A DNA stretch of 63,608 nt, filler included, from Dimorphilus gyrociliatus (lineage: Eukaryota > Animalia > Annelida): assembly GCA_904063045.1 (NCBI GenBank). It is 4 parts of 4 records of this genome, joined end to end, with 100 filler letters (N's around TTAATTAATTAA, not from the genome) between each part and the next. Parts side by side here need not be neighbours in the genome. Positions count along the whole stretch, not along the records: positions 32,887 to 55,648 come from CAJFCJ010000254.1; 3 more parts are not named here. One strand, written 5' to 3'. The position numbers and the translations under genes were made by a program. Numbering within the stretch: position 1 is the stretch's first letter; every line of letters begins with the position of its first letter. The notes under the pieces were generated by a model that worked only from the letters and a program-made list of their open reading frames with translations, had not been told where the DNA came from and searched no databases. Positions 32,887 through 54,641 of the stretch are shown in pieces.

Positions 32887-33816
32887 GTTAATTGTCACTG
32901 GCTCTATTTTGAATTTTTCCACAGTATCCTGTTCTGGAAGTGGGAAGAACTTGATGAAGCCCTTCCTTAATAGGAAGAGCTTTTGACCAGTCCATTCATT
33001 GCTATTTGGAGTTCTTTGTTCAGTTTTCTCTAGTTCCAGTAGGAGCTCTCTGTTTCTCTTATTGGCTTCCTCTAATTTATTATTAGCTTCCTGTAATTTA
33101 TTACTAGCTTCCTCCAGCTTACTGGAGCTTGCTTTGATTGTACTTTCTAGCTCTACCACTTTGTTCCTAAGGTCTAGATTATCTTTTCGTAGGTTATTCA
33201 ATGTGGGTCTACTCAGACCCACATAAGAGTATTTATTGTTACAGAGAACTGAGTTCTCATATTGCTCATGAGCTAACTCCTTAGGCAGAGGTGTATTAAA
33301 ATTCTCCAAGAGCTCCAGGGTAACCCCTTGGATACTAACTATTGTTGGTCTGGTACTACAAGGGAACTCATTCGGGTTTGTCCCTCTAATGTCTGGGTTA
33401 CTTTTCTTAAACTTAGCTATTTCTACCCAGTCAGCATTATATAGTAATTGCAACAATGTACTCACTTTCTTGACATGGAAGTGTTCTGTCTCTGGTTGGA
33501 CCATGATAGGAAGGATTCTTATGTTGGTAGTGTTGCAGGTCCTCATATGAAGAGCCAGAGCTCCAACATTGTCTTTGCTTGTTTTTGATTTTTTTAATGA
33601 AAATCCATACATTCTATGTAGTGGAGATATGGTGAAACTAGCCATAGCCCAGTTGCACTTTTTGCAATCAGCAATGAAGAACAAGTGGTCTGAATTACAA
33701 TTGAGGTCTCCCTCAATCTTTTTAGTAATACGGCCATCTCTGGAGCTCCAGGACCCTCCCTGTATTAGGGCTGGGCAAAGTTTGCACTTATTTGTCATGC
33801 ATCTAGAAGCTGGCAT
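32887..33816 (-). CDS. PLE ORF3, partial (cut by contig end)
   Basis: Same as 37870-39075 apart from indels near the contig end. Confidence 0.85.
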
Positions 33817-33944
33817 CTTTAGGAAGTACTTGTTAACACTGTCAAGTGAAGAGGATGACTGAGGTTCTGCACCAGTATATATAGTGGTATAGTTGAGTAC
33901 TGTCAGAGGTGTTGAGTACTAAGTTGTAAGAACTGTTGAAGCTC

Positions 33945-34215
33945 ACTTGAGCTCTTGGAGCTCTATTGAGTTCTTGGAGCTCTACTGAGCTCTTAGAGCT
34001 CTTGGAGCTCTACTGAGATCTTAGAGCTCTTGGAGCTCTACTGAGCTCTTAGAGCTCTTGGAGCTCTACTGAGTTCTTGGAGCTCTACTGAGCTCTTCAA
34101 GGTCTCCTGTGGTATTGGAGCTCAACTGAGCTACTGTAGCTCCTTGGAGCTCTTGGACCTTATTGTGGCTAACTGTAGCTTTTGGAGTTCATTGTAGCTT
34201 GTAGAGCTTGTTGTA
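33945..34215. repeat. GAGCTC palindrome-rich tandem repeats between the RT stop and ORF3
   Basis: GAGCTCTTGGAGCTCTACT / GAGCTCTTA units, repeated at 39204-39474, about 44340-44610 and about 49560-49830. Confidence 0.9.
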
Positions 34216-34229
34216 GCTGCTGAAATTCA

Positions 34230-36506
34230 TTACAGTTCTTGGAGTTCACTTTGGCTTTTCTGGAGTAGAATTTTTTCTATGTGTTTTTCCATCATCTCAT
34301 CAACTTTCTTATTGATAAGCCAGTGTCTGGTAGTAGTTGGGATCCTAAAGGCAGTTATTGACTTATACATTTGGAAGTGAGAACTGTTAGGGGCTAGCTG
34401 GTGGATTGTTCTCTTGACTTTCTCAGCTATTAGTTGGGCTCCATTGTGTTGTGGTATGAGGAGTGGTACCATTTCCTTGGTGGTAAAACCTTCATGTTTA
34501 TTAAGACCATGTGGGAACAGTGTATCCAAATGGTTGATGATTTCAGTTTCTTTTCTCATTAACCAAACTATTACTGAGCTCTCTGTGAGTTCCTTAGGAG
34601 CTACAGCAGCTATGTAGATCTTGAACTTCTTGATATCATGTGTTGCCATATGGTTATATAGTGGTCTATCTATCTTGTTTTTGAAGCCCAAATTATGGGT
34701 ACCCCATCTACACTTGATAGTATCTGTAGTCATACCCACATATGCTAACCCACACATAGAGCATTGTAGGATATAGACACAACCCTTGGTGTTACAGTTA
34801 ATGCTTTGGGTTAAGCTCCAAGAGTTGACCTGGTATAGGTCAAATACCTCATCTCTGGAGTCCAGTCTGAGGCAAGTATCACATCTAGTGTTACAACATT
34901 TATTGACTTTATACCTCAGTGCCTTTTTTTCTTCAGCTCTGGTGTTGAATTTTTTAATGGTGTCCCTCCCCATTCTCCAGGTGTAGCCATTGACTTTATT
35001 GATTCTAATGAGATCTTTGAACTGTGAGATAGCCATTTTGGGATCTTTGCAGTTTCTCATATATCTAGTTAGCTGGCTCATTAGGATACCTCTGAATGTG
35101 TGTGGTGGATGATTGGATTTGGTGTGTAGCAGTATTCTGGAGTCAGTAGCCTTAAAATGGGTTTCCCAGGAAAGAGAGTTCCCTAGTATATGTAGGTCCA
35201 GGTCCAGAAAAGTACTTGATTTAGGGTTCTGGGACCAAGTGAGCTTGATATCTGGATTTCTGTTGTTTAGTCTTGTCTTGAACTCCATGATGTCCCTGTC
35301 TGGTTTAGTGACCAAAATGATATCATCAATGTACCTGCCATAGTACTCAATGTCCTCTGTAAAATCTGTGACCAATTCGTGTTCCCAGGTGTGTAACACT
35401 ATGTTTGCATATGCTGGACTAAATGGAGCTCCCATAGCTGTGCCCTTTATTTGCAGGAACCTGTGGTTCCCAAAGGTGAAATCATTGTTGTTGAGACAAA
35501 TCCAAAGGAGTTCCAAGATTAGTTCATCAGGTCTACCTTCATGGTAGTGGGTTAACATGAACTCTTTAACAGCTTTTATGCCCCATTGAGGGTTAATGCT
35601 TGGGTATAGAGCTTCTACATCTGCTGTGAAGATCCCTCTGTTTTGCCAATTATGTATCATAGATAGTTTGCCAATGCAATGTTGGGTGTTTTTAACATAG
35701 CTAGTGGTACTTTTTGCCATTTTGACCAGATAGTGATCAACAAATTTAGATATTTTATATAGATCAGAGCCTACATAGCTCACCACTGGTCTCCCCTTGG
35801 GGATCCTATATGGTACTCTCCATTGGGAGCTGTGTTTATGAATTTTAGGTAGGAGGTAAAACTTTCTATCTCCTGGGCTATTCTGTGGAGCCATCAGAGT
35901 TGCTGTAGATTTGGTAATAATTTTCATTGTAACCAATTCATTAAGGATTTCATTTAACCGGGTCCATTGGGTAGAGCTTATTTTATTGCTGACCTGTTTG
36001 TAGGTTGTTCTGTCACAGAGCTGTGTCATGGCTTCAAAGACATAGTCCTCTTTGTCCATTAAGACAATCCTTCTTCCTTTATCAGCTGGTTTAATGATAA
36101 TGTTAGGATGATTGTTGAGGAAGTTTTTCATTAGGCCTTGATTTTCAAAACCCTTCTGGGCTCTATTAATTTTTTCAGAGCCCTTTATAATGTTATATAT
36201 CCTGTCTGTGATATGGTTAATTTCTGGAATATGACTAGAGGGCATGTAATTTAACTCCCTCATTAGTTCAGGTAGAGATGGTGCTTGTATGTCAAGAAGT
36301 TTTTTCTTTAGTGGATTATTTCGAAATCTTGGTGTACCATTTTTCTCAATGATCTTTAGCCATTTTAATGTATAATCCAAGATCCCTGTGAAGTGCAAGT
36401 TTATAAATTTGTTTGGGGCCCAAGTCCAGGCAAAGCCTAGACCTTGTGCCATAGTGTTCAGGCAAGAACTCTTGATGTTAGAGTTCCTACATAGGTTAAA
36501 AACCAT
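34230..36506 (-). CDS. PLE reverse transcriptase with C-terminal GIY-YIG endonuclease (Neptune/Naiad-like Cys linker)
   Basis: KPADKG, TADVEALYPSI, GTAMGAPFSPAYAN and RYIDD; CCNTRCDTC linker; VYILQCSMCGLAYVG...R...H...E...GLN; reading frame open upstream to about 36605. Confidence 0.97.
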   Translation of the reverse strand: MVFNLCRNSNIKSSCLNTMAQGLGFAWTWAPNKFINLHFTGILDYTLKWLKIIEKNGTPRFRNNPLKKKLLDIQAPSLPELMRELNYMPSSHIPEINHITDRIYNIIKGSEKINRAQKGFENQGLMKNFLNNHPNIIIKPADKGRRIVLMDKEDYVFEAMTQLCDRTTYKQVSNKISSTQWTRLNEILNELVTMKIITKSTATLMAPQNSPGDRKFYLLPKIHKHSSQWRVPYRIPKGRPVVSYVGSDLYKISKFVDHYLVKMAKSTTSYVKNTQHCIGKLSMIHNWQNRGIFTADVEALYPSINPQWGIKAVKEFMLTHYHEGRPDELILELLWICLNNNDFTFGNHRFLQIKGTAMGAPFSPAYANIVLHTWEHELVTDFTEDIEYYGRYIDDIILVTKPDRDIMEFKTRLNNRNPDIKLTWSQNPKSSTFLDLDLHILGNSLSWETHFKATDSRILLHTKSNHPPHTFRGILMSQLTRYMRNCKDPKMAISQFKDLIRINKVNGYTWRMGRDTIKKFNTRAEEKKALRYKVNKCCNTRCDTCLRLDSRDEVFDLYQVNSWSLTQSINCNTKGCVYILQCSMCGLAYVGMTTDTIKCRWGTHNLGFKNKIDRPLYNHMATHDIKKFKIYIAAVAPKELTESSVIVWLMRKETEIINHLDTLFPHGLNKHEGFTTKEMVPLLIPQHNGAQLIAEKVKRTIHQLAPNSSHFQMYKSITAFRIPTTTRHWLINKKVDEMMEKHIEKILLQKSQSELQEL

Positions 36507-36577
36507 ACTTGGTTCTGTTTTATTGATAAAAACATGTTTAAAAACATTATAATTGTTATGCTGTTGTGCTTGAAGAG

Positions 36578-37360
36578 TTAGGAGTTTCCCTGGTCCATAG
36601 TCTCCTCATCAGCACTCATTTTCTCTGTAATTCCTTTAAATAAGACAGTCATGATTGCCAATTCCTTTCTTAGTTCTGAGATTTCATCCTTAGAGTTCTT
36701 GTAAGGTTCTTTGTGTCTGGTTTTGTCTGCTGGTTTCTTGGATCTCTGTATGGTAGGGAGCTCTTTGAAATTTTCATGGAGCTCTCTATTGAAAGAGTCA
36801 TCTAAGGGAGCTTTTAGATTTTTGGTAACCAAGTATACACTTTCTTTAAGTTGGGCCCAATTAATCTTTTTGCCATATTTTTGTATCGATCTGGTTTTAG
36901 CTACTTCAATAGCTTTCTTAACCTCTGATTGATTGTAATTTTGCTGATCATTTTTTATCTTGTCCCTCATTTTAGAGAGCCTCTCATTGAGCTCCTCCAG
37001 CACCACTCTATTTGTTTCTCTAGCACAAGTATTGGCTATTTCATGTAGTTGGTTGAGTCTTTCCCCAGTAATGGGACCTCCTGTGATTCTAATTGAGTCC
37101 ATCATATCCATGGCCTTTTTGGTCCAAGGGTTATATTCCTTAAGTCTCTCAATCTGGTGAATAGAACTGTAAGTTTTACTCATAGCTCTAGTCAGGGCTT
37201 TTTCCTTGTCACTTAGAGAACCTTTAAAACCATTTGCATCAGGTGCAGTCTGGCTCTTTGTGACTTGTACCCATCTGGGTTTGTCTGGAGCTCTGGAGTA
37301 GGGTGTCTTTCTTCCTGTTTTTTTTGTTCTTCTAGGAGCTTGGTTTTGTTTAGGGTCCAT
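36578..37360 (-). CDS. PLE ORF1, a basic coiled-coil protein (260 aa from MDPKQ)
   Basis: First ATG at 37360; helical heptad-rich segments; lies directly upstream of the RT. Confidence 0.85.
   Translation of the reverse strand: MDPKQNQAPRRTKKTGRKTPYSRAPDKPRWVQVTKSQTAPDANGFKGSLSDKEKALTRAMSKTYSSIHQIERLKEYNPWTKKAMDMMDSIRITGGPITGERLNQLHEIANTCARETNRVVLEELNERLSKMRDKIKNDQQNYNQSEVKKAIEVAKTRSIQKYGKKINWAQLKESVYLVTKNLKAPLDDSFNRELHENFKELPTIQRSKKPADKTRHKEPYKNSKDEISELRKELAIMTVLFKGITEKMSADEETMDQGNS
36584..36590 (-). promoter_or_regulatory. -1 ribosomal frameshift slippery heptamer G GGA AAC
   Basis: XXXYYYZ in the correct ORF1 phase, one codon before the stop; the -1 frame is open into the RT; also at 41843-41849 and 47205-47211. 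Confidence 0.75.
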
Positions 37361-37721
37361 TGCCAAAGTCTGTACTGGGTAGGTTAGGGTTTGGTAAGGG
37401 TTATGGGTTAGGCCACTCACACAACTCTGGTAATGTTTTTGGGAACTGGTTAGCTAGTGTTCCAGTGTAATACCTAACTTTTACTCAATGTTAGGTAGGG
37501 GTTCTCCTTGGTCAGGATTATAGATCTGGGCTCCCAGTCTTAGTCAGGTTTTGGGAACTGGTTAGTTGGTGTTCCAGGGTTCTACCAATTTTCCAATAGG
37601 TAGGAGTTCTCTATGTCTGAGCTCCTTTGTGCTTCAGTGCTCTGTCAAACTCTTAGTCTTATTCAATAACAATTAAATTTTTTCTTTTTCATCAACTTTT
37701 TATTTTAAACTTTAAAACATA

Positions 37722-37766
37722 TTACAACAATATTTCGCCTCTACTTGAGGCTTCATCAGGTTGTAA
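37722..37766 (-). ncRNA. Minimal type I hammerhead ribozyme of the PLE
   Basis: TTACAAC-CTGATGA-A-GCCTC(AAGTA)GAGGC-GAAA-TA-TT-GTTGTAA. Confidence 0.85.
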
Positions 37767-37869
37767 GTTAAACTGAACACAAACATAAGTATTTATACCA
37801 TCACCACAAAAAATTTATATATAAAAAACATGAAAACAAGATGGCTGCCCTTGCACTAGCGCCACCTAA

Positions 37870-39075
37870 CTACATTTTTCTTTGTTTCTTTGAAGGTACT
37901 ACTTCAAATTCATCACCTGATCTTTTGATTAGGAGTCTTTGTTGTATTCCAATATTGCTATTCTCTTTTGGAGTGCTTTCATATTGATACTCACCATCTT
38001 CCATATCATCATAGTTGTCATCATCTTCTTCCTCCTCAGTCTGTTCCTTGGTAGGGACCATTTCTTTGTCTGGAGTTTGTTGAGCTCCTCTGTCTATAGT
38101 TTGTTGAGCTCCTGGTGTAGAGTTGGAGTCAAGATCCTCAAGGTTAATTGTCACTGGCTCTATTTTGAATTTTTCCACAGTATCCTGTTCTGGAAGTGGG
38201 AAGAACTTGATGAAGCCCCTTCCCTTAATAGGAAGAGCTTTTGACCAGTCCCATTCATTGCTATTTGGAGTTCTTTGTTCAGTTTTCTCTAGTTCCAGTA
38301 GGAGCTCTCTGTTTCTCTTATTGGCTTCCTCTAATTTATTATTAGCTTCCTGTAATTTATTACTAGCTTCCTCCAGCTTACTGGAGCTTGCTTTGATTGT
38401 ACTTTCTAGCTCTACCACTTTGTTCCTAAGGTCTAGATTATCTTTTCGTAGGTTATTCAATGTGGGTCTACTCAGACCCACATAAGAGTATTTATTGTTA
38501 CAGAGAACTGAGTTCTCATATTGCTCATGAGCTAACTCCTTAGGCAGAGGTGTATTAAAATTCTCCAAGAGCTCCAGGGTAACCCCTTGGATACTAACTA
38601 TTGTTGGTCTGGTACTACAAGGGAACTCATTCGGGTTTGTCCCTCTAATGTCTGGGTTACTTTTCTTAAACTTAGCTATTTCTACCCAGTCAGCATTATA
38701 TAGTAATTGCAACAATGTACTCACTTTCTTGACATGGAAGTGTTCTGTCTCTGGTTGGACCATGATAGGAAGGATTCTTATGTTGGTAGTGTTGCAGGTC
38801 CTCATATGAAGAGCCAGAGCTCCAACATTGTCTTTGCTTGTTTTTGATTTTTTTAATGAAAATCCATACATTCTATGTAGTGGAGATATGGTGAAACTAG
38901 CCATAGCCCAGTTGCACTTTTTGCAATCAGCAATGAAGAACAAGTGGTCTGAATTACAATTGAGGTCTCCCTCAATCTTTTTAGTAATACGGCCATCTCT
39001 GGAGCTCCAGGACCCTCCCTGTATTAGGGCTGGGCAAAGTTTGCACTTATTTGTCATGCATCTAGAAGCTGGCAT
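37870..39075 (-). CDS. PLE ORF3 (401 aa): degenerate GIY-YIG-like N-terminus, coiled coil, acidic tract and C-terminal NLS-like motif
   Basis: CxxxxCxxC...NC...CxxC spacing mirrors the RT's EN; KLEEASN/KLQEANN/KLEEANK heptads; EEEDDDNYDD; PSKKQRKM. Confidence 0.85.
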   Translation of the reverse strand: MPASRCMTNKCKLCPALIQGGSWSSRDGRITKKIEGDLNCNSDHLFFIADCKKCNWAMASFTISPLHRMYGFSLKKSKTSKDNVGALALHMRTCNTTNIRILPIMVQPETEHFHVKKVSTLLQLLYNADWVEIAKFKKSNPDIRGTNPNEFPCSTRPTIVSIQGVTLELLENFNTPLPKELAHEQYENSVLCNNKYSYVGLSRPTLNNLRKDNLDLRNKVVELESTIKASSSKLEEASNKLQEANNKLEEANKRNRELLLELEKTEQRTPNSNEWDWSKALPIKGRGFIKFFPLPEQDTVEKFKIEPVTINLEDLDSNSTPGAQQTIDRGAQQTPDKEMVPTKEQTEEEEDDDNYDDMEDGEYQYESTPKENSNIGIQQRLLIKRSGDEFEVVPSKKQRKM

Positions 39076-39488
39076 CTTTAGGAAGTACTTGTTAACACTG
39101 TCAAGTGAAGAGGATGACTGAGGTTCTGCACCAGTATATATAGTGGTATAGTTGAGTACTGTCAGAGGTGTTGAGTACTAAGTTGTAAGAACTGTTGAAG
39201 CTCACTTGAGCTCTTGGAGCTCTATTGAGTTCTTGGAGCTCTACTGAGCTCTTAGAGCTCTTGGAGCTCTACTGAGATCTTAGAGCTCTTGGAGCTCTAC
39301 TGAGCTCTTAGAGCTCTTGGAGCTCTACTGAGTTCTTGGAGCTCTACTGAGCTCTTCAAGGTCTCCTGTGGTATTGGAGCTCAACTGAGCTACTGTAGCT
39401 CCTTGGAGCTCTTGGACCTTATTGTGGCTAACTGTAGCTTTTGGAGTTCATTGTAGCTTGTAGAGCTTGTTGTAGCTGCTGAAATTCA

Positions 39489-41765
39489 TTACAGTTCTTG
39501 GAGTTCACTTTGGCTTTTCTGGAGTAGAATTTTTTCTATGTGTTTTTCCATCATCTCATCAACTTTCTTATTGATAAGCCAGTGTCTGGTAGTAGTTGGG
39601 ATCCTAAAGGCAGTTATTGACTTATACATTTGGAAGTGAGAACTGTTAGGGGCTAGCTGGTGGATTGTTCTCTTGACTTTCTCAGCTATTAGTTGGGCTC
39701 CATTGTGTTGTGGTATGAGGAGTGGTACCATTTCCTTGGTGGTAAAACCTTCATGTTTATTAAGACCATGTGGGAACAGTGTATCCAAATGGTTGATGAT
39801 TTCAGTTTCTTTTCTCATTAACCAAACTATTACTGAGCTCTCTGTGAGTTCCTTAGGAGCTACAGCAGCTATGTAGATCTTGAACTTCTTGATATCATGT
39901 GTTGCCATATGGTTATATAGTGGTCTATCTATCTTGTTTTTGAAGCCCAAATTATGGGTACCCCATCTACACTTGATAGTATCTGTAGTCATACCCACAT
40001 ATGCTAACCCACACATAGAGCATTGTAGGATATAGACACAACCCTTGGTGTTACAGTTAATGCTTTGGGTTAAGCTCCAAGAGTTGACCTGGTATAGGTC
40101 AAATACCTCATCTCTGGAGTCCAGTCTGAGGCAAGTATCACATCTAGTGTTACAACATTTATTGACTTTATACCTCAGTGCCTTTTTTTCTTCAGCTCTG
40201 GTGTTGAATTTTTTAATGGTGTCCCTCCCCATTCTCCAGGTGTAGCCATTGACTTTATTGATTCTAATGAGATCTTTGAACTGTGAGATAGCCATTTTGG
40301 GATCTTTGCAGTTTCTCATATATCTAGTTAGCTGGCTCATTAGGATACCTCTGAATGTGTGTGGTGGATGATTGGATTTGGTGTGTAGCAGTATTCTGGA
40401 GTCAGTAGCCTTAAAATGGGTTTCCCAGGAAAGAGAGTTCCCTAGTATATGTAGGTCCAGGTCCAGAAAAGTACTTGATTTAGGGTTCTGGGACCAAGTG
40501 AGCTTGATATCTGGATTTCTGTTGTTTAGTCTTGTCTTGAACTCCATGATGTCCCTGTCTGGTTTAGTGACCAAAATGATATCATCAATGTACCTGCCAT
40601 AGTACTCAATGTCCTCTGTAAAATCTGTGACCAATTCGTGTTCCCAGGTGTGTAACACTATGTTTGCATATGCTGGACTAAATGGAGCTCCCATAGCTGT
40701 GCCCTTTATTTGCAGGAACCTGTGGTTCCCAAAGGTGAAATCATTGTTGTTGAGACAAATCCAAAGGAGTTCCAAGATTAGTTCATCAGGTCTACCTTCA
40801 TGGTAGTGGGTTAACATGAACTCTTTAACAGCTTTTATGCCCCATTGAGGGTTAATGCTTGGGTATAGAGCTTCTACATCTGCTGTGAAGATCCCTCTGT
40901 TTTGCCAATTATGTATCATAGATAGTTTGCCAATGCAATGTTGGGTGTTTTTAACATAGCTAGTGGTACTTTTTGCCATTTTGACCAGATAGTGATCAAC
41001 AAATTTAGATATTTTATATAGATCAGAGCCTACATAGCTCACCACTGGTCTCCCCTTGGGGATCCTATATGGTACTCTCCATTGGGAGCTGTGTTTATGA
41101 ATTTTAGGTAGGAGGTAAAACTTTCTATCTCCTGGGCTATTCTGTGGAGCCATCAGAGTTGCTGTAGATTTGGTAATAATTTTCATTGTAACCAATTCAT
41201 TAAGGATTTCATTTAACCGGGTCCATTGGGTAGAGCTTATTTTATTGCTGACCTGTTTGTAGGTTGTTCTGTCACAGAGCTGTGTCATGGCTTCAAAGAC
41301 ATAGTCCTCTTTGTCCATTAAGACAATCCTTCTTCCTTTATCAGCTGGTTTAATGATAATGTTAGGATGATTGTTGAGGAAGTTTTTCATTAGGCCTTGA
41401 TTTTCAAAACCCTTCTGGGCTCTATTAATTTTTTCAGAGCCCTTTATAATGTTATATATCCTGTCTGTGATATGGTTAATTTCTGGAATATGACTAGAGG
41501 GCATGTAATTTAACTCCCTCATTAGTTCAGGTAGAGATGGTGCTTGTATGTCAAGAAGTTTTTTCTTTAGTGGATTATTTCGAAATCTTGGTGTACCATT
41601 TTTCTCAATGATCTTTAGCCATTTTAATGTATAATCCAAGATCCCTGTGAAGTGCAAGTTTATAAATTTGTTTGGGGCCCAAGTCCAGGCAAAGCCTAGA
41701 CCTTGTGCCATAGTGTTCAGGCAAGAACTCTTGATGTTAGAGTTCCTACATAGGTTAAAAACCAT
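39489..41765 (-). CDS. PLE RT-GIY-YIG, second copy
   Basis: Translation identical to 34230-36506. Confidence 0.97.
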   Translation of the reverse strand: MVFNLCRNSNIKSSCLNTMAQGLGFAWTWAPNKFINLHFTGILDYTLKWLKIIEKNGTPRFRNNPLKKKLLDIQAPSLPELMRELNYMPSSHIPEINHITDRIYNIIKGSEKINRAQKGFENQGLMKNFLNNHPNIIIKPADKGRRIVLMDKEDYVFEAMTQLCDRTTYKQVSNKISSTQWTRLNEILNELVTMKIITKSTATLMAPQNSPGDRKFYLLPKIHKHSSQWRVPYRIPKGRPVVSYVGSDLYKISKFVDHYLVKMAKSTTSYVKNTQHCIGKLSMIHNWQNRGIFTADVEALYPSINPQWGIKAVKEFMLTHYHEGRPDELILELLWICLNNNDFTFGNHRFLQIKGTAMGAPFSPAYANIVLHTWEHELVTDFTEDIEYYGRYIDDIILVTKPDRDIMEFKTRLNNRNPDIKLTWSQNPKSSTFLDLDLHILGNSLSWETHFKATDSRILLHTKSNHPPHTFRGILMSQLTRYMRNCKDPKMAISQFKDLIRINKVNGYTWRMGRDTIKKFNTRAEEKKALRYKVNKCCNTRCDTCLRLDSRDEVFDLYQVNSWSLTQSINCNTKGCVYILQCSMCGLAYVGMTTDTIKCRWGTHNLGFKNKIDRPLYNHMATHDIKKFKIYIAAVAPKELTESSVIVWLMRKETEIINHLDTLFPHGLNKHEGFTTKEMVPLLIPQHNGAQLIAEKVKRTIHQLAPNSSHFQMYKSITAFRIPTTTRHWLINKKVDEMMEKHIEKILLQKSQSELQEL

Positions 41766-41836
41766 ACTTGGTTCTGTTTTATTGATAAAAACATGTTTAA
41801 AAACATTATAATTGTTATGCTGTTGTGCTTGAAGAG

Positions 41837-42033
41837 TTAGGAGTTTCCCTGGTCCATAGTCTCCTCATCAGCACTCATTTTCTCTGTAATTCCTTTAAAT
41901 AAGACAGTCATGATTGCCAATTCCTTTCTTAGTTCTGAGATTTCATCCTTAGAGTTCTTGTAAGGTTCTTTGTGTCTGGTTTTGTCTGCTGGTTTCTTGG
42001 ATCTCTGTATGGTAGGGAGCTCTTTGAAATTTT
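41837..42033 (-). pseudogene. 5'-truncated ORF1 fused to the telomere
   Basis: Matches 36578-36774, then switches to TTAGG(G)n. Confidence 0.9.
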
Positions 42034-42640
42034 AGGTTAGGGGTTAGGGTTAGGTTAGGGTTAGGGTTAGGTTAGGGTTAGGGTTAGGTTTAGGGTTAGG
42101 GTTAGGGTTAGGGTTAGGTTAGGGTTAGGGTTAGGGTTAGGGTTAGGGTTAGGTTAGGTTAGGGTTAGGGTTAGGGTTAGGGTTAGGTTAGGTTAGGTTA
42201 GGGTTAGGTTAGGTTAGGGTTAGGGTTAGGGTTAGGTTAGGGTTAGGGTTAGGGTTAGGGTTAGGTTAGGGTTAGGGTTAGGGTTAGGTTAGGGTTAGGG
42301 TTAGGTTAGGGTTAGGTTAGGGTTAGGGTTAGGGTTAGGTTAGGGTTAGGTTAGGGTTAGGGTTAGGGTTAGGGTTAGGGTTAGGTTAGGGTTAGGGTTA
42401 GGGTTAGGGTTAGGTTAGGGTTAGGGTTAGGGTTAGGGTTAGGGTTAGGGTTAGGGTTAGGGTTTAGGTTAGGGTTAGGTTAGGGTTAGGGTTAGGGTTA
42501 GGGTTAGGGTTAGGGTTAGGGTTAGGGTTAGGGTTAGGGTTAGGGTTAGGTTAGGTTAGGGTTAGGTTAGGGTTAGGGTTAGGTTAGGGTTAGGTTAGGG
42601 TTAGGGTTAGGTTAGGGTTAGGGTTAGGGTTAGGGTTAGG
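42032..42640 (+). repeat. Telomeric repeat tract, (TTAGGG)n mixed with TTAGG
   Basis: About 610 bp running into the gap. Confidence 0.97.
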
Positions 42641-43307
42641 NNNNNNNNNNNNNNNNNNNNNNNNNNNNNNNNNNNNNNNNNNNNNNNNNNNNNNNNNNNN
42701 NNNNNNNNNNNNNNNNNNNNNNNNNNNNNNNNNNNNNNNNNNNNNNNNNNNNNNNNNNNNNNNNNNNNNNNNNNNNNNNNNNNNNNNNNNNNNNNNNNNN
42801 NNNNNNNNNNNNNNNNNNNNNNNNNNNNNNNNNNNNNNNNNNNNNNNNNNNNNNNNNNNNNNNNNNNNNNNNNNNNNNNNNNNNNNNNNNNNNNNNNNNN
42901 NNNNNNNNNNNNNNNNNNNNNNNNNNNNNNNNNNNNNNNNNNNNNNNNNNNNNNNNNNNNNNNNNNNNNNNNNNNNNNNNNNNNNNNNNNNNNNNNNNNN
43001 NNNNNNNNNNNNNNNNNNNNNNNNNNNNNNNNNNNNNNNNNNNNNNNNNNNNNNNNNNNNNNNNNNNNNNNNNNNNNNNNNNNNNNNNNNNNNNNNNNNN
43101 NNNNNNNNNNNNNNNNNNNNNNNNNNNNNNNNNNNNNNNNNNNNNNNNNNNNNNNNNNNNNNNNNNNNNNNNNNNNNNNNNNNNNNNNNNNNNNNNNNNN
43201 NNNNNNNNNNNNNNNNNNNNNNNNNNNNNNNNNNNNNNNNNNNNNNNNNNNNNNNNNNNNNNNNNNNNNNNNNNNNNNNNNNNNNNNNNNNNNNNNNNNN
43301 NNNNNNG
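42641..43307. other. Scaffold gap
   Basis: N-run without the linker. Confidence 0.95.
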
Positions 43308-46044
43308 ATATCAAGCTCACTTGGTCCCAGAACCCTAAATCAAGTACTTTTCTGGACCTGGACCTACATATACTAGGGAACTCTTTTCCTGGGAAACCAT
43401 TTTAAGGCTACTGACTCCAGAATACTGCTACACACCAAATCCAATCATCCACCACACACATTCAGAGGTATCCTAATGAGCCAGCTAACTAGATATATGA
43501 GAAACTGCAAAGATCCCAAATGGCTATCTCACAGTTCAAAGATCTCATTAGAATCAATAAAGTCAATGGCTACACCTGGAGAATGGGGAGGGACACCATT
43601 AAAAAATTCAACACCAGAGCTGAAGAAAAAAGGCACTGAGGTATAAAGTCAATAAATGTTGTAACACTAGATGTGATACTTGCCTCAGACTGGACTCCAG
43701 AGATGAGGTATTTGACCTATACCAGGTCAACTCTTGGAGCTTAACCCAAAGCATTAACTGTAACACCAAGGGTTGTGTCTATATCCTACAATGCTCTATG
43801 TGTGGGTTAGCATATGTGGGTATGACTACAGATACTATCAAGTGTAGATGGGGTACCCATAATTTGGGCTTCAAAAACAAGATAGATAGACCACTATATA
43901 ACCATATGGCAACACATGATATCAAGAAGTTCAAGATCTACATAGCTGCTGTAGCTCCTAAGGAACTCACAGAGAGCTCAGTAATAGTTTGGTTAATGAG
44001 AAAAGAAACTGAAATCATCAACCATTTGGATACACTGTTCCCACATGGTCTTAATAAACATGAAGGTTTTACCACCAAGGAAATGGTACCACTCCTCATA
44101 CCACAACACAATGGAGCCCAACTAATAGCTGAGAAAGTCAAGAGAACAATCCACCAGCTAGCCCCTAACAGTTCTCACTTCCAAATGTATAAGTCAATAA
44201 CTGCCTTTAGGATCCCAACTACTACCAGACACTGGCTTATCAATAAGAAAGTTGATGAGATGATGGAAAAACACATAGAAAAAATTCTACTCCAGAAAAG
44301 CCAAAGTGAACTCCAAGAACTGTAATGAATTTCAGCAGCTACAACAAGCTCTACAAGCTACAATGAACTCCAAAAGCTACAGTTAGCCACAATAAGGTCC
44401 AAGAGCTCCAAGGAGCTACAGTAGCTCAGTTGAGCTCCAATACCACAGGAGACCTTGAAGAGCTCAGTAGAGCTCCAAGAACTCAGTAGAGCTCCAAGAG
44501 CTCTAAGAGCTCAGTAGAGCTCCAAGAGCTCTAAGATCTCAGTAGAGCTCCAAGAGCTCTAAGAGCTCAGTAGAGCTCCAAGAACTCAATAGAGCTCCAA
44601 GAGCTCAAGTGAGCTTCAACAGTTCTTACAACTTAGTACTCAACACCTCTGACAGTACTCAACTATACCACTATATATACTGGTGCAGAACCTCAGTCAT
44701 CCTCTTCACTTGACAGTGTTAACAAGTACTTCCTAAAGATGCCAGCTTCTAGATGCATGACAAATAAGTGCAAACTTTGCCCAGCCCTAATACAGGGAGG
44801 GTCCTGGAGCTCCAGAGATGGCCGTATTACTAAAAAGATTGAGGGAGACCTCAATTGTAATTCAGACCACTTGTTCTTCATTGCTGATTGCAAAAAGTGC
44901 AACTGGGCTATGGCTAGTTTCACCATATCTCCACTACATAGAATGTATGGATTTTCATTAAAAAAATCAAAAACAAGCAAAGACAATGTTGGAGCTCTGG
45001 CTCTTCATATGAGGACCTGCAACACTACCAACATAAGAATCCTTCCTATCATGGTCCAACCAGAGACAGAACACTTCCATGTCAAGAAAGTGAGTACATT
45101 GTTGCAATTACTATATAATGCTGACTGGGTAGAAATAGCTAAGTTTAAGAAAAGTAACCCAGACATTAGAGGGACAAACCCGAATGAGTTCCCTTGTAGT
45201 ACCAGACCAACAATAGTTAGTATCCAAGGGGTTACCCTGGAGCTCTTGGAGAATTTTAATACACCTCTGGCCTAAGGAGTTAGCTCATGAGCAATATGAG
45301 AACTCAGTTCTCTGTAACAATAAATACTCTTATGTGGGTTGAGTAGACCACATTGGAATAACCTACCGAAAAGATAATCTAGACCTTAGGAACAAAGTGG
45401 TAGAGCTAGAAAGTACAATCAAAGCAAGCTCCAGTAAGCTGGAGGAAGCTAGTAATAAATTACAGGAAGCTAATAATAAATTAGAGGAAGCCAATAAGAG
45501 AAACAGAGAGCTCCTACTGGAACTAGAGAAACTGAACAAAGAACTCCAAATAGCAATGAATGGGACTGGTCAAAAGCTCTTCCTATTAAGGGAAGGGGCT
45601 TCATCAGTTCTTCCCACTTCCAGAACAGGATACTGTGGAAAAATTCAAAATAGAGCCAGTGACAATTAACCTTGAGGATCTTGATCCCAACCTACACCAG
45701 GAGCTCAACAAACTATAGACAGAGGAGCTCAACAAACTCCAGACAAAGAAATGGTCCCTACCAAGGAACAGACTGAGGAGGAAGAAGATGATGACACTAT
45801 GATGATATGGAAGATGGTGAGTATCAATATGAAAGACTCCAAAAGAGAATAGCAATATTGGAATCAACAAAGACTCCTAATCAAAAGATCAGGTGATGAA
45901 TTTGAAGTAGTACCTTCAAAGAAACAAAGAAAATGTAGTTAGGGTGGCGCTAGTGCAAGGGCAGCCATCTTGTTTTCCATGTTTTTTATATATAAATTTT
46001 TTGTGGTGATGGTATAAATACTTATGTTTGTGTTCAGTTTTAAC

Positions 46045-46089
46045 TTACAACCTGATGAAGCCTCAAGTAGAGGCGAAATATTGTTGTAA
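46045..46089 (+). ncRNA. PLE hammerhead ribozyme copy
   Basis: Same motif as 37722-37766. Confidence 0.85.
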
Positions 46090-49000
46090 TATGTTTTAAA
46101 GTTTAAAAAAAAAGTTGATGAAAAAGAAAAAATTTAATTGTTATTGAATAAGACTAAGAGTTTGACAGAGACTGAAGCACAAAGGAGCTCAGACATAGAG
46201 AACTCCTACCTATTGGAAATTGGTAGAACCCTGGAACACCAACTAACCAGTTCCCAAAACCTGACTAAGACTGGGAGCCCAGATCTTATAATCCTGACCA
46301 AGGAGAACCCTACCTAACATTGAGTAAAAGTTAGGTATTACACTGGAACACTAGCTAACCAGTTCCAAAAACATTACCAGAGTTGTGTGAGTGGCCTAAC
46401 CCATAACCCTTACCAAACCTAACCTACCCAGTACAGACTTTGCAATGGACCCTAAACAAAACCAAGCTCCTAGAAGAACAAAAAAAACAGGAAGAAAGAC
46501 ACCCTAGCTCCAGAGCTCCAGACAAACCCAGATGGGTACAAGTCACAAAGAGCCAGACTGGCACCTGATGCAAATGGTTTTAAAGGTTCTCTAAGTGACA
46601 AGGAAAAAGCCCTGACTAGAGTATGAGTAAAACTTCAGTTCTATTCACCAGATTGAGAGACTTAAGGAATATAACCTTGGACCAAAAGGCCATGGATATG
46701 ATGGACTCAATTAGAATCACAGGAGGTCCCATTACTGGGGAAGACTCAACCAACTACATGAATAGCCAATACTTGTGCTAGAGAAACAAATAGAGTGGTG
46801 CTGGAGGAGCTCAATGAGAGGCTCTCTAAAATGAGGGACAAGATAAAAATGATCAGCAAAATTACAATCAATCAGAGGTTAAGAAAGCTATTGAAGTAGC
46901 TAAAACCAGATCGATACAAAATATGGCAAAAGATTAATTGGGCCCACTTAAAGAAGTGTATACTTGGTTACCAAAATCTAAAAGCTCCCTTAGATGACTC
47001 TTTCAATAGAGAGCTCCATGAAAATTTCAAAGAGCTCCCTACCATACAGAGATCCAAGAAACCAGCAGACAAAACCAGACACAAAGAACCTTACAAGAAC
47101 TCTAAGGATGAAATCTCAGAACTAAGAAAGGAATTGGCAATCATGACTGTCTTATTTAAAGGAATTACAGAGAAAATGAGTGCTGATGAGGAGACTATGG
47201 ACCAGGGAAACTCCTAACTCTTCAAGCACAACAGCATAACAATTATAATGTTTTAAACATGTTTTTATCAATAAAACAGAACCAAGTATGGTTTTTAACC
47301 TATGTAGGAACTCTAACATCAAGAGTTCTTGCCTGAACACTATGGCACAAGGTCTAGGCTTTGCCTGGACTTGGGCCCCAAACAAATTTATAAACTTGCA
47401 CTTCACAGGGATCTTGGATTATACATTAAAATGGCTAAAGATCATTGAGAAAATGGTACACCAAATTTCGAAATAATCCACTAAGAAAAACTTCTTGACA
47501 TACAAGCACCATCTCTACCTGAACTAATGAGGGAGTTAAATTACATGCCCTCTAGTCATATTCCAGAAATTAACCATATCACAGACAGGATATATAACAT
47601 TATAAAGGGCTCTGAAAAAATTAATAGAGCCCAGAAGGGTTTTGAAAATCAAGGCCTAATGAAAAACTTCCTCAACAATCATCCTAACATTATCATTAAA
47701 CCAGCTGATAAGGAAGAAGGATTGTCTTAATGGACAAGAGGACTATGTCTTTGAAGCCATGACACAGCTCTGTGACAGAACAACCTACAAACAGGTCAGC
47801 AATAAAATAAGCTCTACCCAATGGACCCGGTTAAATGAAATCCTTAATGAATTGGTTACAATGAAAATTATTACCAAATCTACAGCAACTCTGATGGCTC
47901 CACAGAATAGCCCAGGAGATAGAAAGTTTTACCTCCTACCTAAAATTCATAAACACAGCTCCCAATGGAGAGTACCATATAGGATCCCCAAGGGGAGACC
48001 AGTGGTGAGCTATGTAGGCTCTGATCTATATAAAATATCTAAATTTGTTGATCACTATCTGGTCAAAATGGCAAAAAGTACCACTAGCTATGTTAAAAAC
48101 ACCCAACATTGCATTGGCAAACTATCTATGATACATAATTGGCAAAACAGAGGGATCTTCACAGCAGATGTAGAAGCTCTATACCCAAGCATTAACCCTC
48201 AATGGGGCATAAAAGCTGTTAAAGAGTTCATGTTAACCCACTACCATGAAGGTAGACCTGATGAACTAATCTTGGAACTCCTTTGGATTTGTCTCAACAA
48301 CAATGATTTCACCTTTGGGAACCACAGGTTCCTGCAAATAAAGGGCACAGCTATGGGAGCTCCATTTAGTCCAGCATATGCAAACATAGTGTTACACACC
48401 TGGGAACACGAATTGGTCACAGATTTTACAGAGGACATTGAGTACTATGGCAGGTACATTGATGATATCATTTTGGTCACTAAACCAGACAGGGACATCA
48501 TGGAGTTCAAGACAAGACTAAACAACAGAAATCCAGATATCAAGCTCACTTGGTCCCAGAACCCTAAATCAAGTACTTTTCTGGACCTGGACCTACATAT
48601 ACTAGGGAACTCTCTTTCCTGGGAAACCCATTTTAAGGCTACTGACTCCAGAATACTGCTACACACCAAATCCAATCATCCACCACACACATTCAGAGGT
48701 ATCCTAATGAGCCAGCTAACTAGATATATGAAACTGCAAAGATCCCAAAATGGCTATCTCACAGTTCAAAGATCTCATTAGAATCAATAAAGTCAATGGC
48801 TACACCTGGAGAATGGGAGGGACACCATTAAAAAATTCAACACCAGAGCTGAAGAAAAAAGGCACTGAGGTATAAAGTCAATAAATGTTGTAACACTAGA
48901 TGTATACTTGCCTCAGACTGGACTCCAGAGATGAGGTATTGACCTATACCAGGTCAACTCTTGGAGCTTAACCCAAAGCATTAACTGTAACACCAAGGGT

Positions 49001-51271: not shown

Positions 51272-51316
51272 TTACAACCTGATGAAGCCTCAAGTAGAGG
51301 CGAAATATTGTTGTAA
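51272..51316 (+). ncRNA. PLE hammerhead ribozyme copy
   Basis: Same motif as 37722-37766. Confidence 0.85.
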
Positions 51317-51645
51317 TATGTTTTAAAGTTAAAATAAAAAGTTGATGAAAAAGAAAAAATTTAATTGTTATTGAATAAGACTAAGAGTTTGACAGAGCAC
51401 TGAAGCACCAAGGAGCTCAGACATAGAGAACTCCTACCTATTGGAAAATTGGTAGAACCCTGGAACACCAACTAACCAGTTCCCAAAACCTGACTAAGAC
51501 TGGGAGCCCAGATCTATAATCCTGACCAAGGAGAACCCCTACCTAACATTGAGTAAAAGTTAGGTATTACACTGGAACACTAGCTAACCAGTTCCCAAAA
51601 ACATTACCAGAGTTGTGTGAGTGGCCTAACCCATAACCCTTACCA

Positions 51646-51714
51646 AACCCTAACCCTAACCCTAACCCTAACCTAACCCTAACCCTAACCCTAACCCTAA
51701 CCCTAACCCTAACC
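51646..51714 (-). repeat. About 11 telomeric repeats at the proximal junction of the PLE array
   Basis: (CCCTAA)n on the + strand, between the element's 3' end and unique DNA. Confidence 0.95.
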
Positions 51715-53640: not shown

Positions 53641-54016
53641 TGCTCTTGCTTGGCAAAATCTATGCGCTTGAAAGTTATAACAATACTGGTTCTACTCGAA
53701 CCTTTAAACAAATGTTTAAATTAAAACGGTTTATTCGCAATAATAATACTTAAGCAAGTAACAATATGAGAGTTCAATAGCAGAGTTAGGTTAGGACTTG
53801 GGGTTAGGGTTAGGCCACACCCTAGGCAAGTTAATTAAATTATAACTTGACCAAACCTTTATTGGTAATTAAAGATGAGCCTTCAAGCTGACTAATGAAA
53901 CCTCTCTTTGGCCAATGTTATAGCATTTTCTTGCATAGATTTTTAAGATGTACATGTATAAGTTGCATAAAATAATAGAGTTCAAGCATGTTAAATATAA
54001 CCAATGTTGTACACAT
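53641..54016 (-). repeat. R1 copy whose internal ~290 bp is replaced by a telomere-like patch
   Basis: Its reverse complement matches 32154-32353 and 32640-32786, joined through TAGGTTAGGACTTGGGGTTAGGGTTA. Confidence 0.85.
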
Positions 54017-54641
54017 GTACTATGATATCTCAATTATATTCTGTAATTAATTGATGACTATTTTCTATAAAACTTTAAACAAACTACTTTAAAGGGGACA
54101 ACCAATTTTGACTGTTTATTGAAAGTTGGTCTTGCAAAATTTACTGTGTCCAATTTTTCCTGCCATTTCCTTTATGGTTTCTCTCTATATTCTGATGTTT
54201 AACTTGTTAACTGAAGCAATTCATTATTATTAAATATTAATAATTAAGAATGCTGTATGTTTTGAGAGTGTTTTCTGATCTTAAGTGAATGCTTTTTATC
54301 TCAACCCAAAAATACCATATATTCTACTTGCTGTGTTTAAATCAATACAAGAGAACAAAGAAAAGAAACACTCATTGATTAATATTCCATATGTATTCCT
54401 GTTGAAAGAATGTTTTTTATATTTCTGACATTTTAGAAATAAGGAACAAAAAATGAACTGAGGAAGCCCTATGAATTTTTCATAAATTGAATGAAGACAT
54501 ATTCAATCGAAAGATTGATTATTAATCTTTCTAAACAAAATTTTGAACTTTTATATTAATAATTCATAGAAATATTTCCTATATAACCACATAATGTTTT
54601 CTTATACATCTCAAATACGCTTTAGATTTTCCAAAAAAATA

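Follow-up and report, generated by a model that had tools for sequence, protein, structure and literature searches.

A probable pseudo-endonuclease accessory gene in a telomere-associated Penelope-like element of the annelid Dimorphilus gyrociliatus

INTRODUCTION

What does the third gene of a Penelope-like element (PLE) encode when that element already carries a reverse transcriptase (RT) with its own endonuclease (EN), and from what did the gene arise? The question is raised by a retroelement that lies next to telomeric repeats in the genome of Dimorphilus gyrociliatus. Among retroelements, PLEs are the nearest kin of telomerase. Members that possess an EN (EN+) insert throughout the genome, whereas EN-minus PLEs attach to chromosome ends (PMC8557442). 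The EN-minus telomeric elements Athena and Coprina, and the multi-ORF Terminons, are characterized by reverse-complement telomeric repeats, a hammerhead-like motif, and a location at chromosome ends (PMC8557442). In EN+ elements of the Neptune and Nematis type, the EN (cd10442) contains an internal CCHH motif and is preceded by a CX2-5CxxC linker, which has been defined as zinc-finger-like (PMC8557442). Our search of the literature found no pseudo-EN ORF described for PLEs.

Here, we analyze a stretch of 63,608 nucleotides (the window), within which the gene, ORF3, lies on the piece taken from CAJFCJ010000254.1 (positions 32887-55648). An earlier note on this DNA had proposed that ORF3 begins with an apparently inactive paralogue of the element's own EN. 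Our results support a PLE-type EN origin for the protein, and they point to an accessory gene that is considerably older than a recent duplication would imply.

RESULTS

The element that carries ORF3 is organized in units of ~5.26 kb, each made up of ORF1, RT-EN, ORF3, a 3' UTR with a hammerhead-like motif, and a telomere-like terminus. It therefore has three ORFs, rather than a single ORF or ORF1 and RT-EN only. Units are repeated head to tail with a period of ~5259 bp, inverted arrays also occur, and the arrays are joined to TTAGGG telomeric repeats. The features of the element are as follows.

39489..41765, minus strand: RT-EN gene of the unit that carries ORF3, 758 aa (Pfam RVT_1, 1.3e-10; GIY-YIG, 3.2e-6)
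34431..34922, minus strand: EN module of RT-EN, residues 529-692, in which no family-invariant catalytic residue is missing
36578..37360, minus strand: ORF1 of the next unit, with its ATG at 37360
39195..39416, strand not assigned: tandem repeats of 19/28 nt, located in the spacer that separates the stop of RT-EN from the start of ORF3, from repeat analysis
37870..39075, minus strand: ORF3, intact, 401 aa, third gene of the element
37723..37767, minus strand: minimal hammerhead-ribozyme-like motif in the 3' UTR (CUGAUGA, helix II, GAAA, helix I)
37382..37420, minus strand: 3' terminus of the unit, with GTGAGTGGCC and then degenerate CCCTAA-like repeats, adjoining the next unit
42035..42640, plus strand: (TTAGGG)n array that caps the minus-strand array at its outermost, 5'-truncated unit
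51625..51714, plus strand: (CCTAAC)15, placed after the 3' end of the final unit in the plus-strand array, with AT-rich unique DNA beyond

The RT-EN protein, of which an identical copy is encoded at 34230-36506, has 608 homologues of PLE type, among which the Pfam families DUF8422, RVT_1, HTH_animal, and GIY-YIG are found. [quoted passage not shown] Its tandem and inverted (pseudo-LTR) organization and its hammerhead-like motif close to the 3' end also fit this class. ORF3 starts 413 nt 3' of the RT-EN stop, and the equivalent spacer of a sister element in L001 contains an analogous 21-nt repeat (3368-3444). The hammerhead-like pattern was found in all three copies of the 3' UTR, with none expected by chance and a fold z-score of -3.96. 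In a second family, located on the public D. gyrociliatus contig L013, helices I and II differ in sequence while their pairing is preserved. Rfam, searched at E <= 1, did not report a hammerhead; its one match, to mir-1756 on the GAGCTC repeats, is spurious.

Truncated copies indicate how far the mobile unit extends. The outermost unit of the minus-strand array, which is truncated in ORF1 at 42033, still has ORF3, and the second family on L013 is truncated in the RT with ORF3 kept. Because 5'-truncated copies retain ORF3, the gene is part of the retrotransposed unit. The plus-strand array, for its part, stops just before ORF1.

The reading frame at 37870-39075 had been described as intact, and it is so on the minus strand; read on the plus strand, the same interval is full of stops and was ruled out. 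An identical ORF3 protein is encoded at 7736-8938 of L013. The peptides quoted in the earlier note (CMTNKCKLC, DLNCNSDHLFFIADCKKCNWAMASFT, and LALHMRT for ORF3; CCNTRCDTC, SINCNTKGCVYILQCSMCGLAYVGMT, and LYNHMAT for the RT tail) are all present in the respective translations. So are the heptad coiled coil, acidic tract, and PSKKQRK motif that it had placed behind the N-terminal domain. The parts of the protein, all on the minus strand, are as follows.

38740..39072, minus strand: pseudo-endonuclease, residues 2-112, with homology to the zinc linker and GIY-YIG EN (hhalign, 98.3 %; EN HMM, 37 bits)
39034..39060, minus strand: linker C-x4-C-x2-C, residues 6-14, matching the CX2-5CxxC of PLE ENs
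38689..38949, minus strand: GIY-YIG-like core (beta-beta-alpha-alpha-beta-alpha), residues 43-129, from the AlphaFold model, VIA-align, and the residue table
38551..38658, minus strand: extra beta-hairpin region past the core, residues 140-175 (model strands at 144-146, 155-162, and 165-172)
38269..38463, minus strand: heptad-repeat (coiled-coil-like) region, residues 205-269, from a crude heptad script
37978..38046, minus strand: acidic tract, residues 344-366, from the translation
37876..37896, minus strand: PSKKQRK, residues 394-400, a basic NLS-like C-terminus, from the translation

The heptad region was called with our own crude script, which is not a calibrated coiled-coil predictor; Pfam coiled-coil matches at residues 205-268 are weak and below threshold, and five of the seven relatives of ORF3 have an equivalent segment. 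Basic clusters close to the C-terminus also occur in several relatives.

Our analyses show that the first ~112-130 residues of ORF3 descend from a PLE EN module, comprising the zinc linker and a GIY-YIG domain with its internal CCHH. Pairwise BLASTP placed residues 3-90 of ORF3 against residues 534-623 of RT-EN (22 % identity, E 0.011), which is borderline when taken alone. An HMM built from 31 PLE EN domains matched ORF3 with a score of 37 bits and, counted as a single comparison, an E of 1e-13. In the reverse direction, an HMM of the ORF3 family matched the EN of ORF3's own element at E ~1e-6, and for other PLEs the EN domains were matched at E 7e-9 to 3e-8. Furthermore, hhalign aligned the ORF3 family (A1) with the EN family (A2) at 98.3 % (E 1.8e-14) over 109 columns, which run through beta1, beta2, alpha1, alpha2, and beta3 and beyond the Cys positions. 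Finally, when residues 1-200 of ORF3 were searched with phmmer in a set of 1.84 billion proteins, the C-termini of PLE RT-EN proteins were recovered at E 1e-6 to 6e-4. As judged from these sequence profiles, the resemblance to the EN lies beyond chance. The same phmmer search matched a protein of 2314 aa (P0127) that is an ankyrin-repeat protein, and we discarded it as a false positive. A search of PDB sequences with the ORF3-family profile gave only noise, and a word search with RT-EN residues 520-758 gave no match.

The predicted structure leads in the same direction. An AlphaFold model made from ORF3 relatives alone has GIY-YIG topology (pLDDT 77.6), with secondary-structure elements in the same order as in the model of the true EN from RT-EN (pLDDT 92.6). 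Among 48,161 PDB chains, the best three matches to the ORF3 model were I-TevI, T4 EndoII, and Hpy188I, all of them GIY-YIG nucleases, although the similarity is weak (Z 4.3-3.9). VIA-align matched residues 43-129 of the model with I-TevI at Z 4.3, compared with Z 11.5 for the EN model, and the two best PDB matches (1ln0_A and 2wsh_A) are common to both. A comparison of the ORF3 N-terminus with GIY-YIG folds, which had been suggested as a check on the proposed homology, thus recovers the topology with weak similarity to PDB structures. The nearest neighbors of the ORF3 model in the ESM Atlas are proteins of PLE type, with 125-144 residues aligned at TM 0.48-0.55 by query. Of six rows, five have Pfam families of the PLE type (GIY-YIG, DUF8422, or RVT_1) and the sixth has HTH_animal only; a feature search of the Atlas scored 0.93 to GIY-YIG clusters. 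By homology, and leaving activity aside, ORF3 belongs to the GIY-YIG fold. The beta-hairpin at residues 140-175 has no counterpart in the EN profile, and both the HMM and the hhalign alignments stop before it.

An argument can be made that the element simply captured an unrelated zinc-finger and coiled-coil protein, and that the resemblance is confined to a Cys-rich zinc knuckle. The Cys pattern does dominate the pairwise alignment with its E of 0.011, Pfam matched no GIY-YIG domain on ORF3 (only weak coiled-coil noise), and Foldseek found nothing in the PDB at E <= 0.001. Yet a knuckle would not account for an alignment of 109 columns that extends past the Cys positions, nor for an independent model with the secondary-structure order of the EN, nor for best PDB matches that ORF3 and the true EN have in common, nor for closest Atlas structures that are of PLE type. 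We regard such a capture as very improbable.

Given descent from an EN, the retained and replaced residues bear on function. As the earlier note had claimed, the putative zinc ligands are kept, at every Cys and His position (C6, C11, and C14; C51, C54, H90, and C94), with the second His present as Cys. C6-x4-C11-x2-C14 aligns with C9, C14, and C17 of the EN family, and these linker columns are Cys in the EN family as well as in the seven ORF3-family members that span the segment. Within the domain, C51, C54, and H90 of the internal CCHH, which has two Cys between GIY and YIG, are invariant in the ORF3 family. The second His is Cys (C94) in seven of the eight members, so the internal site reads CCHC. 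Two further positions, W23 and P103, are invariant in the ORF3 family and new relative to the EN.

The catalytic positions have a different history. Six residues are invariant in 31 active-looking EN domains (Tyr50, Tyr61, Gly63, His76, Glu125, and Asn141 in A2 numbering), and all are replaced in ORF3. GIY reads LFF and YVG reads MAS, which agrees in the residue table with the changes (VY to FF, YVG to MAS) that had been noticed by eye. The GIY Tyr is F47 in ORF3 and is F, L, A, or I in six of the eight members, with Tyr only in P0126 and P0128. No member keeps the Tyr and Gly of YIG, and the His of helix 1 has been lost throughout the family. The Arg of helix 1 aligns with R68 (hmmalign) or M69 (hhalign), an ambiguous placement at a position that is not conserved across the family. 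In helix 3, where the alignment is less certain, the metal-binding Glu is Gln in ORF3 and Glu only in P0126 and P0128, and the GLN motif with its structural Asn is missing.

Because the EN-invariant residues are replaced, a noncutting protein is the reasonable reading. Alternatively, ORF3p could be an active nuclease with a modified catalytic set, for example one acting on the second strand or on particular structures alongside RT-EN. In favor of this, the protein still has the fold and the zinc sites, the invariant Arg of the EN can be paired with an Arg in ORF3, P0124, and P0128, and both the GIY Tyr and the Glu are present in P0126 and P0128; since R68 may also be retained, residual or altered catalysis is possible in some members. 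Against an active enzyme, five or six of seven EN-invariant positions are replaced in ORF3 (Tyr by Phe, Tyr by Met, Gly by Ser, and Glu by Gln, with His and Asn lost), and not one catalytic position is conserved across the eight members. We consider an active nuclease improbable, and a protein that has lost cutting remains our preferred reading.

The ORF3 family comprises eight proteins from only two organisms among the 1.84 billion proteins searched with phmmer. They share an architecture of pseudo-EN, heptad region, and charged tails, and they form an old, single clade apart from all EN domains (tree support 100/100). Three of them sit 3' of PLE RT-EN genes. The EN of ORF3's element groups with that of the L001 sister element (99/97) rather than with its own ORF3, and on these groupings the duplication is older than the divergence of elements that have RTs of just 43-44 % identity. 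The proposal that ORF3 is a duplicated EN turned noncutting therefore stands with respect to its PLE-type origin, kept ligands, and replaced catalytic residues, but the tree rejects a recent duplication of the element's own EN.

The L001 element has the same order of ORF1, RT-EN, and ORF3, with both RT (42-44 % identity) and ORF3 (27 % identity) intact. ORF1 is 23 % identical between the two elements in a global codon alignment, and ORF3 has diverged about as much, not faster.

Two members, P0129 and P0134, are syntenic stand-alone host genes in two species and are 35 % identical to each other. Behind each lies a convergent gene, orthologous between the two (51 % identity, E 7e-128), and no RT was found within 10 kb on either side of P0129 (L008) or across the whole 6.7-kb contig of P0134 (L009). 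It appears that these stand-alone relatives have been retained by the host.

This distribution can be set against the idea that an internal duplication left ORF3 behind as a relic without function, of no use to the element and open only because its copies are young. The piece holds three more copies (32887-33816, which is cut by the edge of the piece; 44739-45938; and 49965-51168), whose differences from ORF3 at 37870-39075 are almost all single-base indels that break the frame. Copies in the piece are ~99-100 % identical and thus carry no selection signal, and three of four bear such indels, as a relic might. We read the indels by preference as assembly noise, with real ones possible. However, intact ORFs of 281-478 aa with the ORF3 architecture persist in distant elements and in the second family, the Cys and His ligands, W23, and P103 do not vary, the proteins form one old, monophyletic clade, divergence is on a par with that of ORF1, and the syntenic host pair retains the ORF at 35 % identity. 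A relic is, in our estimation, even a little less probable than an active nuclease. Formal dN/dS could not be used because dS is saturated: between elements and species it is saturated or incomputable, the window copies differ only by indels, and the NG86 estimate of ~0.39 for P0129 and P0134 is rough only.

DISCUSSION

Our results make it probable that ORF3p is the product of a pseudo-endonuclease accessory gene in a telomere-associated PLE, with a presumed role in binding nucleic acid. As a zinc-stabilized pseudo-endonuclease, it would have lost cutting while its retained zinc modules might still bind nucleic acid. The protein may oligomerize through its heptad region, and its basic C-terminus would be compatible with entry into the nucleus. 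There, it could serve as an accessory factor that holds the RNP or its target, whether telomeric DNA or the element's own 3' end. Alternatively, its task may be to modulate the intact EN of the RT-EN protein.

A more specific scenario can be imagined, although we think it rather unlikely. ORF3p would bind the telomere end or its repeats and partner with RT-EN, by forming a heterodimer or masking the EN, such that an EN+ PLE would integrate by attaching to chromosome ends, in the manner of its EN-minus counterparts. The annelid would then have co-opted the stand-alone copies (P0129/P0134, and possibly P0123/P0124) for telomere maintenance or for defense against the element.

Comparison with known systems helps to place the protein. 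Like the EN of canonical EN+ PLEs, ORF3 has the linker Cys triplet, the GIY-YIG Cys pair, and the first His, with homology over ~110 residues and an equal order of predicted secondary structure. Unlike that EN, which is the C-terminus of the RT, its domain is N-terminal on a separate protein. It also lacks the GIY and YIG tyrosines, Gly, His, Glu, and Asn, has Cys for the second His, and has gained the invariant W23 and P103, and it is extended by a beta-hairpin, a heptad region, and tails that are charged. I-TevI (catalytic domain, 1ln0) and T4 EndoII (2wsh) are the best structural neighbors of both the ORF3 and EN models, yet ORF3 scores lower (Z 4.3 and 4.1, versus 11.5 and 7.5 for the EN) at 6-7 % identity and without the catalytic residues.

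The host element resembles Athena and Coprina in its location at chromosome ends, its 3' reverse-complement telomeric repeats, its adjacent hammerhead-like motif, and its possession of more than one ORF, but it differs from them in that its RT keeps a complete and, from its residues, apparently active EN. Accessory proteins are familiar from non-LTR retrotransposons, among them L1 ORF1p and HeT-A Gag, the latter of which targets telomeres in Drosophila. As in those proteins, a small module that putatively binds nucleic acid is combined with a coiled coil in a gene that sits beside the RT and evolves faster than it. Unlike them, ORF3 shows no sequence relation to either, its module derives from the nuclease family to which the element's own EN belongs, and relative to the RT the gene is placed 3', not 5'.

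With an intact EN, a telomeric site, a 3' terminus in the style of EN-minus elements, and an extra pseudo-EN gene, this PLE lineage of D. gyrociliatus blurs the division between EN+ and EN-minus elements. It also offers a natural case of pseudoenzyme evolution within a mobile element, in which the element's own type of nuclease has apparently given rise to a noncatalytic partner, one that the host seems to have received and conserved as a gene. No in vitro system has been established for the integration of PLEs (PMC8557442). Because a putative binding scaffold would be present without catalysis, ORF3 provides a concrete handle on target recognition by PLE ENs.

The element and its arrays

A single repeated Penelope-like element (PLE) makes up nearly all of the piece at 32887-55648 (CAJFCJ010000254.1), and each of its units encodes three proteins in the sense direction. 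Its main features are as follows.

32887-42033, minus strand: head-to-tail array, unit of about 5259 bp
43307-51625, plus strand: inverted array, unit of about 5226 bp
ATG at 37360, stop at 36578, minus strand: ORF1
[quoted passage not shown]
39075-37870, minus strand: ORF3, 401 aa
42035-42640: (TTAGGG)n cap at the end of the minus-strand array that is truncated at 42033
51625-51714: (CCTAAC)15 at the 3' end of the plus-strand array, with AT-rich unique DNA beyond it

Homologues of the RT-EN protein number 608 and carry the PLE domain set DUF8422, RVT_1, HTH_animal and GIY-YIG. Since the plus-strand array terminates at about 51625, equivalent to about 37412 and just upstream of ORF1, the order of the unit is ORF1, RT-EN, ORF3 and 3' UTR. 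A plus-strand reading of 37870-39075 was rejected, as its translation is full of stops; ORF3 lies on the minus strand. The 5' truncation of the outermost minus-strand unit falls within ORF1, at 42033, and about 600 bp of TTAGGG caps the unit. The 3' ends of the elements are directed away from this cap, as expected if priming is from the chromosome end. An N gap (42642-43306) separates the two arrays, which face each other and may be two telomeres scaffolded together. Flanking the plus-strand array, 51715-55648 is AT-rich (25-29 % GC), contains 42-nt tandem repeats at 52056-52172 and 52483-52588, and is probably subtelomeric.

Telomeric repeats in reverse complement at the 3' end, with an adjacent hammerhead, characterise Athena and Coprina, which are EN-minus clades (Craig et al. 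2021, PMC8557442). Unlike Athena and Coprina, the window element contains an EN, yet it is telomere-attached and behaves like the EN-minus telomeric PLEs.

ORF3 as part of the retrotransposed unit

Canonical EN+ PLEs have a single ORF, sometimes plus ORF1 (PMC8557442). Several observations place ORF3 within the mobile unit. Another public contig, CAJFCJ010000107.1 (L013), encodes an identical ORF3 at 7736-8938, along with a second, different PLE family that is truncated inside the RT; its RT tail (9464-9616) remains, along with P0125 (10001-10930), an ORF3-like gene of that family's own. Loss of the 5' part with ORF3 spared is the outcome expected if one RNA is copied by target-primed reverse transcription. 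Furthermore, a Logan contig from another organism (L001, run SRR23372230) has the same three-gene order, with an RT that is 42-44 % identical and an ORF3 of 413 aa (BLASTP E 6e-18 to window ORF3). Other ORF3 copies in the window (32887-33816, 44739-45938 and 49965-51168) carry single-base indels and essentially no substitutions. Single-base indels, often in short homopolymers, likewise account for almost all differences between the plus-strand RT-EN copies and the intact ones, a pattern more likely to reflect long-read assembly noise than decay.

The top database match of ORF3 is DgyrCDS14951 from the annelid Dimorphilus gyrociliatus. The public models DgyrCDS14951 and DgyrCDS14952 (P0001 and P0002) splice ORF3 to the ORF1 of the next unit; P0001 comprises ORF3 residues 1-108 and then later ORF1 sequence. 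The public annotation misrepresents the three ORFs of the element.

Origin of ORF3 from the endonuclease

ORF3 descends from the PLE EN module; it has retained the zinc sites and lost the catalytic residues, and it has a conserved architecture and a linkage to telomere-attached PLEs. The earlier note had aligned the ORF3 N-terminus by eye with the EN. Pairwise, this alignment is borderline (BLASTP, ORF3 residues 3-90 versus RT-EN residues 534-623, 22 % identity, E 0.011), but profile methods settled the descent. Scored with an HMM of EN modules from 31 PLEs, ORF3 reached 37 bits (E 1e-13, one comparison) and the L001 ORF3 35 bits, while a full-length PLE HMM matched every ORF3-like ORF within its EN region (E 7e-11 to 1e-7). 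Conversely, an ORF3-family HMM matched the EN of L002 (7e-9), of L001 (3e-8) and of the window element (about 1e-6). Aligned with hhalign, the ORF3 family (8 sequences) and the EN family (31 sequences) matched over 109 columns at 98.3 % and E 1.8e-14. When ORF3 residues 1-200 were searched with phmmer against 1.84 billion representatives, 14 proteins were returned. Eight were ORF3-like, counting P0001, and five were C-termini or fragments of PLE RT-ENs (E 1e-6 to 6e-4), with Pfam GIY-YIG confirmed in all four that were scanned and P0132 assigned from sequence only. The remaining match was rejected as an ankyrin false positive.

To call ORF3 a paralogue of the element's own EN is correct only at the level of the family. 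An unrooted maximum-likelihood tree of 8 ORF3 domains and 31 ENs places the ORF3 domains, from two organisms only, in a single clade (100/100) with a long branch, and groups the window EN with the L001 EN (99/97), apart from its own ORF3. It follows that the duplication came before these elements split. Between the window element and L001, where dS is saturated, amino-acid identity is 44 % for RT-EN, 27 % for ORF3 (31 % over residues 1-135) and 23 % for ORF1; ORF3 thus evolves like the other accessory gene, ORF1, and remains open.

Residues kept and lost

Columns that are invariant or nearly so in the 31 ENs are three linker cysteines (C9, C14, C17), three further cysteines (C43, C54, C57), the motif positions Y50 (GIY), Y61 and G63 (YIG), and T65, R72, H76, H91, E125, G139 and N141. 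Neptune and Nematis typically have the CX2-5CxxC linker, and all PLE ENs share the CCHH site (PMC8557442). As the earlier note had read it, the putative zinc ligands are kept in ORF3, with all cysteines (C6, C11, C14, C40, C51, C54) and the first histidine (H90) present; the second, less strictly conserved histidine of the CCHH site is a cysteine (C94) in 7/8 family members. The catalytic set is lost, as was also proposed: Y50 is F47, Y61 is M58, G63 is S60 and H76 is missing. In addition, Gln occupies the Glu position and the GLN motif is absent. R68 may be the counterpart of EN R72, though two aligners disagree. No EN catalytic position is conserved across the ORF3 family, and the Glu and the GIY Tyr survive only in P0126 and P0128. 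Every ORF3 family member has W23 and P103, which are not invariant in the ENs, and this points to new constraint rather than simple decay.

Residues 205-269 are heptad-rich according to our own crude script, which is not a calibrated coiled-coil predictor, and 5/7 relatives have an equivalent at about the same place. The acidic tract (344-366) and the NLS-like C-terminal PSKKQRK (394-400) were likewise found, and several relatives have basic clusters near their C-termini.

Predicted fold

An AlphaFold model of ORF3, made from the alignment of eight ORF3-like sequences alone with no EN included, had a mean pLDDT of 77.6. Its order of elements (E45-51, E57-62, H66-71, H86-94, E99-106, H115-127) can be set beside that of the true EN model (E46-54, E60-68, H69-81, H87-95, E100-107, H114-132); extra beta hairpins are predicted at residues 140-175. 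Foldseek against the PDB gave no match. In an exhaustive VIA-align search of 48,161 chains, the top three were GIY-YIG nucleases, all at low Z: I-TevI (Z 4.3 over 79 aligned residues), T4 EndoII (Z 4.1) and Hpy188I (Z 3.9). The true EN model, as a control, scored Z 11.5 with I-TevI and 7.5 with EndoII, so the ORF3 fold is GIY-YIG-like yet clearly diverged or less well modelled. The closest ESM Atlas structures were PLE-type proteins (TM 0.48-0.55 by query, over 125-144 aligned residues that take in the linker), five of six with GIY-YIG, DUF8422 or RVT_1 and one with HTH_animal only. An Atlas feature search linked ORF3 to GIY-YIG clusters with a score of 0.93, as a lead only.

Possible function

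The ORF3 protein (ORF3p) is very probably a pseudo-endonuclease, and we give about even chances to a binding, targeting or regulatory role. ORF3p would no longer cut and would keep the nucleic-acid-binding scaffold of the EN; it would also multimerise, be nuclear and serve the element as an accessory factor. As candidate roles, it might bind the target or an end, bind RNA, or modulate the intact EN. Full-text literature searches on an ORF3 in PLEs, on a pseudo-nuclease and on Dimorphilus PLEs returned nothing relevant; a pseudo-EN ORF3 is undescribed within the literature searched, though it may be mentioned elsewhere.

Stand-alone copies

Some ORF3-like genes stand alone. P0129 (286 aa; L008 10001-10861) is located about 2.46 Mb into a D. 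gyrociliatus contig of 4.5 Mb (CAJFCJ010000005.1), and the 10 kb to each side of it contain no RT. P0134 (290 aa; L009 3477-4349), from the second organism, is 35 % identical to it. Both are directly followed by a convergent gene, and these neighbours are 51 % identical (E 7e-128), which amounts to conserved synteny of a host locus. P0129/P0134 looks like a host gene derived from a PLE ORF3. Both proteins are without a strong heptad segment and have a Tyr/Phe/His-rich C-terminus in common; their NG86 dN/dS of about 0.39 is unreliable because dS is saturated.

No adjacent RT was found in the sequence available for P0124 (D. gyrociliatus, L012 9740-10846) or for P0123 (L003 4985-6097) and P0126 (L006 382-1818) from the second organism. 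These three could be either truncated insertions or co-opted genes. P0124 may be an old truncated insertion; a degenerate CCCTAA tract lies about 250 bp upstream of it, and it is 12-32 kb from a contig end. P0123 adjoins an IBR-domain gene and a beta-lactamase-like gene.

Noncoding features

Three kinds of noncoding feature accompany the genes.

39195-39416, 33936-34157, 44398-44619 and 49624-49845: repeats in the spacer from RT-EN stop to ORF3 start, 19/28-nt units rich in the GAGCTC palindrome
37723-37767 (minus), 46052-46084 (plus) and 51279-51311 (plus): hammerhead-ribozyme-like minimal motif in the 3' UTR, about 100 nt past the ORF3 stop
L013 9391-9440 and 11812-11940, window 37382-37420: shared 3' terminus GTGAGTGGCC

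An unrelated 21-nt repeat occupies this spacer in the sister element (L001 3368-3444). The tandem repeats might serve as internal promoter, translation signal or binding array. Weak Rfam matches to mir-1756 sit on the GAGCTC-rich spacer repeats and were rejected as spurious. The hammerhead-like motif runs CUGAUGA, 5-bp helix II, GAAA, palindromic AUAU, U and 7-bp helix I; Rfam at E <= 1 reported no match for it. The second family (L013 about 11191-11230) has the same core with a differing helix I, helix II and palindrome (ACGU), pairing still being kept. Finally, the 3' terminus, followed by degenerate and then perfect CCCTAA repeats, is common to the two D. gyrociliatus PLE families, which suggests a conserved terminal signal.
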